Positions 2,992 to 37,466 of a stretch of 64,000 bases of DNA are shown here, one piece after another (the stretch's first letter is position 1; the number at the start of each line of letters is the position of its first letter). The notes beneath the pieces are model-generated. The model was given only the letters and a program-made list of their open reading frames with translations. It searched no databases and had not been told where the DNA came from. A program made the translations under genes and the position numbers. This DNA comes from Ylistrum balloti (taxonomy: Eukaryota), in the NCBI RefSeq assembly GCF_031769215.1, contig NW_026781914.1, positions 1 through 64,000 on the forward strand, read 5' to 3'.

Positions 2992-3950
2992 ATAACATGA
3001 CACCAGAGTTCTATAGTAATTCATCCAGGCTTGTGGGTGATGCATTGAAGAGGTCAAAACACTTAATGATGCAACAAATTCACAGAAGTCAACTCAGGAT
3101 GCTGAATCCAAAACGCAAAGGAGGTCCAAAACCAGCTGCCTACATTCGTTTGTCATTCTATCTACTTCCAAGGGGCACTGCCATGCCCAAACTGACAAAG
3201 AATGACCCAGTCATTGCATTACACCAGCAACAGGGATATGGTAGGTCTGATGTTATTACAATGTTGGGGGTAATTGTGTGGGCTGCAATATCTCAGTTAG
3301 TAGAAATTAAATATTGAAATGGTTACTTAATGTTCTGAAATAATTGAACAGAAAACTGCTCTAGTTGGTATCTAATTAAAACAATGTTATATGAGTGTTT
3401 AAATGATACATTATGTACTATGATTTCTACAGGATACCCTTCTATCTACTACAAAAACAAGCCAGAGGCTGAGGGAAAAGCTATGGAAAGACATGTTATA
3501 CAACTAAATCTGACAGAAGCCATGTTTAAACAGCAGCTTCAGGCCTTGTATCCAGTGCTGGTGGACAAAAACTTTCGGCTGTTCACAATTGGCAAGGATC
3601 GACTGCTTCATCAGGCACCTTTCAGACCTCTCCATTATAAGGCCTTGAACTACCGTGGAACAGTAGTTATTAGGATTGTTGTAAGTACGGCCTGTCAATA
3701 TTTATAGGCATCTTTTTATAAAAAAATAATTAGAAAAGTTATCATTGAGATACTCTGTTGATGAACATGTAGCAGGTCATCTTCAATCTGTGATTATAGA
3801 ACATCAACATGTCTTCATGAATTGAAATTTGAGAATTTAACCTTGACTATCCTTATTTTGTAAGACTGTGCCATATTTCTGTCTTTGCAGGATGATGATG
3901 CTAGAATGTTATCAATAGAAGCTGCATATGGTTTACCTATCCCACAGTAA
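2992..3950 (+). CDS. Module 1: 3-exon coding unit (2992-3240, 3433-3680, 3891-3950), ~185 aa, unknown domain
   Basis: Splice sites: tttttatag|AT at 2992 (phase 1), G|gtaggt at 3240, ttctacag|GA at 3433, GTT|gtaagt at 3680, tctttgcag|GAT at 3891, TAA at 3948-3950. Phases match across both introns, giving (D)NMTPEFY...QQGYG/YPSIYY...VVIRIV/DDDARMLSIEAAYGLPIPQ*. AATAAA at 4259 and 4506. An in-frame ATG at 2997 means an independent gene is also possible. Confidence 0.75.
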
Positions 3951-6599
3951 ATCTGCTATCAGTTGAGGACAGTTACCAACACTCTACAACTGGCCCATAG
4001 CCATTGTGGACAGATTTCTCTTTTAAAATTTGGTGCATGCTATCAAGGAGGTAGAATTTTTTAATTCAAGATAGTGACAACTTAAGAAAATTGTTGCAAT
4101 TAGAGTATTACAAACTGACAACATTCCAATATTGATCCATATTGACATTTGTGAATGTTTTGAAATCATAAGAGAAGATATCCCTTAAATATGTGAACTT
4201 TTGAGTGTGATTATTTGTGTAAACTTCTGAGTTTCATTATTGGTGTATACTTGTATCAAATAAAACATGTTTTACTGTACATTTGTGTAATATTTTCAGC
4301 ATCATGTAAAGTTAGAACTGTAATGTTTTCTTTAGTTTGGCTGTCAGTATACAGGAAAAGTGTCTCTTTCAAACACATTTGTAAATGGCAGTACAATTGA
4401 ATTGAAGTCTTAATGTTTTAATCCTGCAGTATTGATTTGTAAGCTTGCAGGATCTCATTAATGTAAAAAGTTTCTGTATCTTATTGTATGTATTGCACTG
4501 ATGAAAATAAAGCAATTAAGAAGTTCTAAACATTTTGTTTATATTTTCATTGCTTATGGTGATTTGCACTCAAGAGGTACTAAGAGAGGAAGCCAATGGA
4601 TGCTCACTGTTCATCTCATTGGTCTGTCACTAGTGTTGTTGTGCTGCATTATCTAGAATGTACTGTTACTTAAAATAGCGATATGTTGTATGCTGGTAAC
4701 TTCTGTGTTGAATAAGAATAAGGAGCTGCCTTCATAGTCAAACGAAATTCTGTCCTTAACATCCGAATGTTAATCATTTTAAACATGAAACATTTACAAT
4801 ATTAACCGAAAAATCCGAAAGTGTGGTGTTCATGCAGTGATATTTGAACAAAAAATACTATCACACACTCAGATGTAACGTATTGTATGGGTTGTGATTT
4901 TTCTGTGCTTTACAAATTAATCAAATTGTTTTAATAGTTAAAATTTCCTTGTTTCCATGTGATTCACTTGCCAATGAATGACCTTATCCTTAACTTGTGT
5001 AGAAAATATGTCAATATTAACATTGACGTGTTGTAATATTATATATTCATTCATATGCCTAATGGGTAATACAGAACTTGACATACATCCGATCAAGTTG
5101 ATAAGAATTAACCTGAGACAAATTGTCACCTTTCTTGGACCATGAGCTGATATATGAAGCTCTGCATGAAGATATGAAACATTGGTATATCGCTGTTTAT
5201 CGGTCACCTGGCTGCTAGAAGTGGACGATGTATTGATGGTAGGTATAAATGTCCAGTTTACGTTTACTTTCTATACAATTTATGAAAAGACAAATGCAAG
5301 GTAACAATGTTTCAACCAAAAAAATTTCCAAAAAATGAAAGTACTATAACCAATGTTGAAAGTGAAGACTTCAGTCCTCAGTCTGATGAAACAGGAAAAT
5401 GAAATCTGAAGCACTTACACCTGTTTTTTTTTAATTTTATTTTGATAATTTAGAATAGTTTTCTTTAAGATCTTAATATTTACAAATAGATATAAACGTT
5501 TCACAAAAGCCTGCCATTCTCATATTTGTATGTAGTATTTACTGAGTTATCCCCCTTTATCAGAATTGGTCATGTGTAGACAGTTGTAACATACCAGTAT
5601 ATAATTATCAACTGAAAAGAAAAAATGGTATCGGAGATTTTTCATTTGATATCCGTGTATCATGATGGTCTTGAAAATCATAGTTTGGAAATATTCCTCA
5701 GATTAACAGTGAACTAGAGGTGTTGGGGAAACAAATGTTATACATATATAATATACAGTTGTATATATATAGTACATGTAATTTTCTATGTCCAGTGGCT
5801 GTATTGAACCAGTAAAATGATTGTTTTGTCAAAATTTCAGTAAGAATTTGACTGAAATACAATGAAAGCTAAATGAGCTGAATACTTCATAATCAACAAC
5901 CACCTACATGTATAAGTTTAAATCTAACCTTGTTTTATAAAATTTTCAGGACTGTCCCATTTGTGTTTGGTTTATGTGTTATTCATTTTGTTTCTTGTCA
6001 AGAACTGATATCTAAAACTACTGAAACTGCACTATACAATACAAGGTGATTTTTGTTTGTTTTTTTTTCAACTGGAAAAATGTCCACTGTTTTTTATGCA
6101 TGCATTTGCATGATATTATTTAGAAATCTTCGGTTTGATGCGGAAGTTTTTTCACGTACCTGGATGCTGAAACCTATGAGGTATGTATACTTGAGGTCTT
6201 ACCAAGGTCAAATACACATGTACCCCTTTGTCAAACTCAGCACTCAGGTCTTTATACAATCTTGTTAGTCTTGCCACATCTTAGGTAGACATTACTATGT
6301 GAATCACACTATCCGGAATGCCAGCAATGTGTTCAACCGAAACTGAATTTTTAAACTCTCAACATGTTTAATACCATTTACACTCTTCATTGAGAAGGAC
6401 CACATAAAATGAAAAGAATTCAAACACTTGCTGTAAATAGAAGTCATACCATTGTACAAAAAAAAAACTGCTCTTAATCAGATGAAACCAGCGGTAGCAG
6501 TTTTAGAATGTAAATACATGTAATGATATTGTAATGGAGATGTAAATTGCCGCAGAGGATTGCAAGACTATGCTATTTATAGAAGGATATCTTTTCCAG

Positions 6600-37083: not shown

Positions 37084-37466
37084 GAAGACAATTCAGGGGA
37101 GCAAAACCAGGTCCCAAACGAGGTAAAATGAAGAACCGGGGAATGTTACGTGGTACTACAGTATATAGACCAGGACAAATGTACGAGTGTGACCAGTGTG
37201 AATATAAAACCCAGGTCAAATACAGAATGCAGCGCCACCAACGAATACATAACGGGGATTTCATCTATTGTAACCATTGTCCATCTCGCTTTACAGAACC
37301 GTGTCGGCTTCTAGCTCACGTGCGATTACGGCATGGTGGTCAAGTGGTCAAGTGTGAACTGTGCGGAGCGGTGTTCCCTTCGGACGATGCTTTGAACGAC
37401 CACAATATGCTACAGCACGCACGAGTACTCACATTCTGTAGCCCGCGCAAACCTAAGCCACCCTAA
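37084..37466 (+). CDS. Module 11: terminal exon with three C2H2 fingers (close paralog of module 10)
   Basis: ttttctttcgcttattttcag|GA at 37084 (phase 1). Hand count: 67/80 aa identical to module 10 across the finger region. TAA at 37464-37466. Confidence 0.88.

Follow-up and report, generated by a model that had tools for sequence, protein, structure and literature searches.

A scallop locus in which one common head is very probably joined to one of twelve alternative terminal modules, most of them encoding C2H2 fingers

The DNA considered in this analysis, hereafter the window, comprises the first 64 kb of contig JAUZWB010000657.1 of the scallop Ylistrum balloti, position 1 being the start of the contig, and it is very probably the variable 3' part of a single gene in which each mRNA combines one common head with one of many tails. 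This gene is the orthologue of LOC117328731 in Pecten maximus and of LOC110455972 in Mizuhopecten yessoensis. There are 12 tails in total, namely module 0, which lies on a neighbouring contig, and modules 1-11, which lie in the window; C2H2-type fingers occur in nine of the twelve (modules 0, 4, 5 and 7-11, as well as module 3, where they are weak), and the non-finger tails are module 6, which is DUF3504/tyrosine-recombinase-like, module 2, which is possibly BEN-like, and module 1, to which no kind has been assigned. The basis for this reading consists of the splice signals, their phase, the conservation of both the signals and the coding sequences, and the annotation of one tail per isoform in three related species. 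An original prediction made from the letters of the window had guessed that the organism was a mollusc, which is right, and had proposed a shared N-terminus followed by interchangeable C-termini, a proposal now supported by the finding of the constant exon and by RefSeq isoforms in three other scallops.

The constant exon that had been predicted to lie upstream of the window does exist. It encodes protein P0053 and is located at the end of another Y. balloti contig, JAUZWB010000858.1, taken in reversed orientation (L002:10001-11581); the P0053 coding sequence is one continuous exon, and the contig ends 2 kb past its stop. The constant part is itself a single coding exon of ~373 amino acids (aa). 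At the very place where the isoforms diverge, the DNA reads ACA ATA G|GTAAGA, i.e. a consensus 5' splice site (ATAG|GTAAGA) that cuts a codon after its first base; P. maximus shares this donor context. The donor was expected to be of phase 1 and to leave a base other than T, and both expectations hold, this base being G. When the donor is read through, the frame continues as Gly-Lys-Ile... into a 153-aa tail with two fingers, i.e. module 0, the twelfth tail. Once this G is combined with the first two bases of modules 1-11, the junction residues are D, G, G, D, V, G, D, E, G, G and G, respectively, and they match those of the orthologous isoforms with the exception of module 8 in M. yessoensis, which has G and not E (E in P. 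maximus).

Regarding the isoforms of other scallops, the search query for module 5 was a longer NCBI model used as carrier, which made longer proteins eligible, and it returned P. maximus isoform X3 (597 aa) together with an Argopecten irradians isoform (604 aa), in which the module-5 orthologue makes up the C-terminal 227-230 residues after an N-terminus of ~370 aa. A search with this N-terminus retrieved seven isoforms of P. maximus, in which the 369-aa head is identical and the tail differs each time, along with four proteins of M. yessoensis (isoform numbers reaching X10), four isoforms of A. irradians and, for Y. balloti, one protein, P0053. In M. yessoensis and A. irradians, the isoforms share the head of their own species, which is 87-89% identical to the P. 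maximus head. Aligned with the window by tblastn, the isoform tails map to modules 1-6 and 8-10 at 57-96% identity, except for module 5 of A. irradians (41%), and every annotated tail among the RefSeq isoforms of the three scallops joins the head at exactly the donor codon. The features of the window, together with the orthologous tails assigned by tblastn and the ratio of nonsynonymous to synonymous substitution rates (dN/dS), are as follows.

1..2991, + strand: 3' portion of the intron separating module 0 (neighbouring contig) from module 1, colinear over positions 1894-2794 with the P. maximus intron.
2992..3240, + strand: module 1, exon a, with a phase-1 acceptor and a phase-1 donor (G|GTAGGT); orthologous tails in P. 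maximus X4 and A. irradians X5.
3433..3680, + strand: module 1, exon b, 96% identical to residues 450-532 of P. maximus X4.
3891..3950, + strand: module 1, exon c with the stop; no Pfam or PDB sequence match.
6600..6728, + strand: module 2, exon a, with a phase-1 acceptor; orthologous tails in P. maximus X2, M. yessoensis KP79_PYT13011 and A. irradians X4.
7044..7114, + strand: module 2, exon b.
7505..7754, + strand: module 2, exon c; the M. yessoensis orthologue is named BEN-domain protein in UniRef, a label not reproduced here.
8419..8612, + strand: module 2, exon d with the stop.
9563..10584, + strand: module 3, 339 aa, mostly of low complexity, with an isolated C2H2-like finger; orthologous tail in P. 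maximus X1; dN/dS 0.29.
12901..13433, + strand: module 4, C2H2 fingers; orthologous tails in P. maximus X5 and A. irradians X6; dN/dS 0.16.
15480..16213, + strand: module 5, C2H2 fingers; orthologous tails in P. maximus X3 and A. irradians X2; dN/dS 0.20.
19465..20585, + strand: module 6, DUF3504/tyrosine-recombinase-like (Crypton-type relatives); orthologous tail in M. yessoensis X2; dN/dS 0.14.
25090..25433, + strand: module 7, two C2H2 fingers; acceptor, phase and open reading frame (ORF) conserved; dN/dS 0.11.
28597..29036, + strand: module 8, four C2H2 fingers; orthologous tails in P. maximus X6 and M. yessoensis X7; dN/dS 0.09.
31659..32089, + strand: module 9, C2H2 fingers, paralogue of module 8; orthologous tail in P. 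maximus X7; dN/dS 0.11.
34302..34669, + strand: module 10, C2H2 fingers; orthologous tail in M. yessoensis X10; dN/dS 0.09.
37084..37466, + strand: module 11, the last one, C2H2 fingers, paralogue of module 10; in M. yessoensis, the annotated gene stops at the orthologue of module 11; dN/dS 0.21.

The eleven acceptors that had been proposed, i.e. the first positions of modules 1-11 as listed above, each consist of a pyrimidine-rich tract followed by AG. All 11 are of phase 1, as had been claimed, since comparison of the three frames at each acceptor leaves a sole long open frame, of 48-372 codons, which begins after two exon bases; from 2.9 to 37.5 kb, the great majority of stop-to-stop frames of at least 90 codons are read on the + strand. 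The acceptors had been picked by eye, and this was raised as a caveat at the time, but they are not an artefact of such picking because, in modules 2-11, the acceptors of P. maximus and Y. balloti occupy exactly the same position of the alignment, and both the AG and the phase are kept. Modules 1 and 2 consist of three and four exons, with stops at 3950 and 8612, respectively; every intron is GT-AG, and joining the exons gives an uninterrupted frame in both cases, with 87% and 78% identity to the respective orthologues. That each module ends in its own stop stands, but the stops initially given for module 1 (3317) and module 2 (6748) were wrong and fall in introns. Likewise, the polyadenylation signals that had been pointed out are present (AATAAA or ATTAAA after most stops) but carry little weight, because at 34% G+C one such hexamer is expected every few hundred bases by chance.

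The same modules could be taken for small zinc-finger genes clustered in tandem, each independent and with its own start, in line with the separate listing of the modules by prokaryote-style gene callers and with the Met found ahead of the first finger in modules 3, 5, 7, 9 and 11. However, the scarcity of Met stressed in the original prediction is real, modules 4, 8 and 10 having none ahead of the first finger and module 6 having its first Met 66 codons in; moreover, conservation begins at the acceptor and not at a Met, and the eleven acceptors share one phase that matches the donor. A cluster of independent genes is, on these grounds, scarcely credible.

Comparison with related genomes, which had been suggested as a check, shows that the constant exon, module 0 and modules 1-11 occur in the same order and orientation in P. 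maximus (L003), where the gene spans 44 kb, and in M. yessoensis (L005). Between P. maximus and Y. balloti, nucleotide conservation is limited to the modules; it sets in 10-160 bp upstream of each acceptor and does not extend past the stop. According to the Nei-Gojobori method, dN/dS ranges from 0.09 to 0.29 for modules 3-11, including modules 7 and 11, and module 6 is under purifying selection. In addition, positions 1894-2794 of the window are colinear with L003:13463-14420, between module 0 and module 1, and this alignment of the window head with the P. maximus intron supports the adjacency of the two Y. balloti contigs. Besides the coding parts, conserved non-coding blocks are found upstream of the acceptors of module 2 (6081-6238), module 4 (12742-12900) and module 8 (28445-28596); the aligned blocks that include these stretches are 73-83% identical to P. 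maximus, and the non-coding blocks may be splicing or promoter elements.

Several points nevertheless weigh against a single gene with one tail per mRNA. The isoforms used as support are automated RefSeq models of other species, the Y. balloti constant exon and the modules are on separate contigs whose adjacency is inferred by synteny, and homology searches retrieved no isoform sequence carrying module 7 or module 11. Furthermore, the NCBI models on JAUZWB010000657.1 join modules serially, e.g. P0001, which combines module 5, from an internal Met, with module 6 (window 15497-20585), and a 378-aa model starts at module 7 (window 25095 onward), as would be expected if splicing combined the modules in series, or a few at a time, in longer mRNAs. 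Yet the start of these models is an internal Met in each case, the constant exon is missing from their contig, every module ends an isoform at its own stop in the three species with an intact locus, and the module ORFs are nearly equal in length in Y. balloti and P. maximus, with conservation ending at the stop. Serial splicing thus appears most improbable, and the serial NCBI models are probably an artefact of the location of the constant exon on the other contig. Searches of the literature by topic and by gene identifier, the coverage of which is incomplete and which do not prove absence, yielded no account of a mollusc locus of this kind; the isoforms are already present in the automated RefSeq annotation.

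Regarding the mechanism, a donor left unused would let translation continue into module 0, with its two fingers, and stop there, the unspliced form then being the default isoform. A donor that is used would be joined to one of the eleven downstream phase-1 acceptors through a Gly, Asp, Val or Glu junction codon, and each acceptor would begin a terminal module that has its own stop and comprises one to four exons. The choice of tail would presumably be made by alternative last-exon splicing in cis, coupled to polyadenylation, while the head may act as a common platform for self-association or co-factor recruitment and the tails may give access to different DNA targets. With the same layout, the modules might also be transcribed from their own promoters and trans-spliced to the constant exon, as in mod(mdg4) and partly in lola. 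Known insect loci of this kind do use trans-splicing, and the conserved non-coding blocks of ~150 bp upstream of modules 4 and 8, plus another located 360-520 bp upstream of module 2, would be compatible with own promoters. However, the twelve modules lie on the same strand, downstream of the donor, in four genomes, where cis-splicing suffices; besides, the regions upstream of the acceptors share no selector motif, only AT-rich words, and show no complementarity to the donor-proximal region beyond 9-10-nt chance matches. Trans-splicing is consequently considered quite improbable.

As for the content of the tails, zf-C2H2 (PF00096) or zf-C2H2_4 (PF13894) is detected above the gathering score in modules 4, 5, 7, 8, 9, 10 and 11, and the finger score of module 0 is just under the Pfam cut-off (24.2 vs 25.2 bits). 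Module 3 gives weak finger-like Pfam matches only and is regarded as a scallop-restricted tail because an exhaustive search yielded 3 matches only. The recombinase-like module of the original prediction was borne out, module 6 matching PF12012 (DUF3504) at 32.7 bits for a gathering score of 29.7; its homologues carry precomputed PF12012 and PF00589 assignments, and homology search gave a 100% identical match to a Y. balloti NCBI protein as well as 50-56% identity to mollusc proteins named KIAA1958-like or Tyr-recombinase-domain. Modules 1 and 2 have no Pfam assignment. The BEN label initially attached to module 2 could not be reproduced, neither by hmmscan against Pfam at E<=10 nor by a PDB profile search, although the module-2 isoform of M. 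yessoensis bears the name BEN-domain protein in UniRef; the AlphaFold2 (AF2) model of this module is poor, with a predicted local distance difference test (pLDDT) score of 43. Among the feature neighbours of the module 1 tail (P0050:370-551) in the language-model atlas are unnamed proteins of ~170 aa from Cnidaria and Porifera, at scores of 0.89-0.90 with 190 shared features, families with ubiquitin-like domains ranking lower. This tail may be a captured domain rather than a DNA binder.

The domain encoded by the constant exon had been left as BTB or other in the original prediction, within a comparison to lola and mod(mdg4); it turns out to be other, and the lola-type BTB part of that comparison falls. 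A BTB head was searched for with Pfam and by fold and was rejected, the folded part of ~50 residues being too small. In the constant region, no Pfam family is found at E<=0.05. The AF2 model of the head, built from six sequences, comprises a helix (residues 15-31) and a β-hairpin (38-47/54-63), with a block-mean pLDDT of 75-87, followed by disorder; no convincing match to this fold was obtained with Foldseek against PDB, AFDB clusters and the ESM Atlas. After the conserved domain of ~50 aa, there is a long disordered linker, acidic and Ser-rich, in which two short motifs, SYRNVSVIDLEH and VKAEPDD, are kept even in a distant relative that is 30% identical overall, protein P0061, encoded on a 10.6-kb metagenome scaffold (L004, ENA ERZ23487774). 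These two stretches look like a putative SUMO-interaction motif and a putative ψKxE site for sumoylation or 'synergy control'. As leads only, the head is near unnamed mollusc and annelid clusters in the language-model atlas and, by predicted structure, near clusters of mollusc finger proteins whose automatic names bear high isoform numbers, e.g. X9 and X25.

The relative P0061 shares 45% identity with the scallop protein in the head domain. On its scaffold, the same donor (CCT ATA G|GTAAG) occurs at the corresponding place, with read-through into a finger pair like that of module 0, and six finger ORFs follow on the + strand, each with a candidate phase-1 pyrimidine-tract/AG acceptor near its 5' end. 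One-to-one orthology between these ORFs and the scallop modules was considered and rejected, as the similarity is that of generic fingers only. The same layout being present without one-to-one orthology of the modules, the design therefore predates scallops and the arrays have turned over since. L004:762-10016 looks like a compact version of the locus, its modules being only 0.3-2.5 kb apart. Upstream of the constant exon and head-to-head with it, the neighbouring gene is a paralogue, found on the - strand in P. maximus (L003:3030-4925), M. yessoensis (L005:585-2507) and Y. balloti (L002:5088-7711); its helix-hairpin domain is 41% identical over residues 15-70 and its terminal finger pair 48% identical. 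In P. maximus, this paralogue is a single ORF of 631 aa. Such an arrangement suggests that the ancestral form was a plain gene made of a head plus two fingers.

Other candidates in the window were discarded. As extra modules, the open frames at 14225-14563, 17487-17831, 27544-27981 and 29699-30001 are not conserved in P. maximus, and the first three have no significant Pfam domain. Past 37466, no extra module is retained, the frames having neither finger similarity nor a Pfam match and the M. yessoensis gene stopping at module 11. A constant exon inside the window was likewise rejected, tblastn having found none and the ORF at 45-356 not being conserved in P. maximus. Further downstream, long + strand frames at 46376-47044, 52435-52899, 55224-55838 and 59984-60955 neither match a Pfam family nor resemble the modules. 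On the - strand, a fragment at 40857-41075 shows 55% identity to residues 378-451 of M. yessoensis X2, which belong to the N-terminal part of the module 6 orthologue; the fragment is a putative free-standing remnant of a related Crypton-like element located downstream of the locus.

The genes lola, mod(mdg4), fruitless and broad are the textbook cases of one gene giving many transcription factors, and they are tied to the arthropod-specific TTK-type BTB. With a modest preference, we consider that the one-head-many-tails design arose independently outside arthropods, with a lophotrochozoan-specific head replacing the BTB as a platform for self-association or co-factors and with new tails gained by exonisation of transposon genes (here the Crypton recombinase), at an age that covers both the scallops and the relative of ~30% identity. 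If true, this design would be a recurrent solution rather than an arthropod oddity, with an unrelated head and a module order that is stable across four scallop genera, and shared with a much more remote relative. The locus would also offer a second system for the choice by one donor among many terminal acceptors, as well as a naturally occurring case in which a transposon recombinase has been taken up as an alternative exon, and the head would be a candidate new protein-interaction domain for mollusc zinc-finger factors. In practice, the current Y. balloti gene models on JAUZWB010000657.1 would be wrong because the locus is split between contigs.

Compared with known systems, the scallop locus resembles Drosophila lola (longitudinals lacking) in its constant 5' coding part combined with a single module out of many alternative 3' terminal ones, all in the same phase and with their own stops, in the pair or few C2H2 fingers encoded by most modules, and in the multi-exon structure of some of them. 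It differs from lola in that the constant part is a single coding exon with a helix-hairpin of ~50 aa instead of a TTK-type BTB, the donor is embedded in an open frame, which makes the unspliced form an additional finger isoform, the tails include recombinase-derived and non-finger domains, and the host is a bivalve mollusc. TTK-type BTB proteins have been reported as not found in Mollusca (PMC11426971). Because its head is not a BTB, the scallop locus is not a member of the lola/mod(mdg4) family. With mod(mdg4), it has in common the single N-terminal part followed by alternative C-terminal modules, ~30 in mod(mdg4), and the occurrence among these of a domain of transposon ancestry, FLYWCH in mod(mdg4) and DUF3504/Crypton-like in scallop module 6; in contrast, the head of Drosophila mod(mdg4) is a BTB, its modules occupy both strands and its trans-splicing is obligatory, whereas the scallop modules are all on the + strand. 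Finally, the match of module 6 to DUF3504 is shared with the domesticated Crypton genes KIAA1958, ZMYM2-4 and QRICH1 but, unlike these, module 6 is not a free gene but an alternative terminal exon of a gene with many tails.

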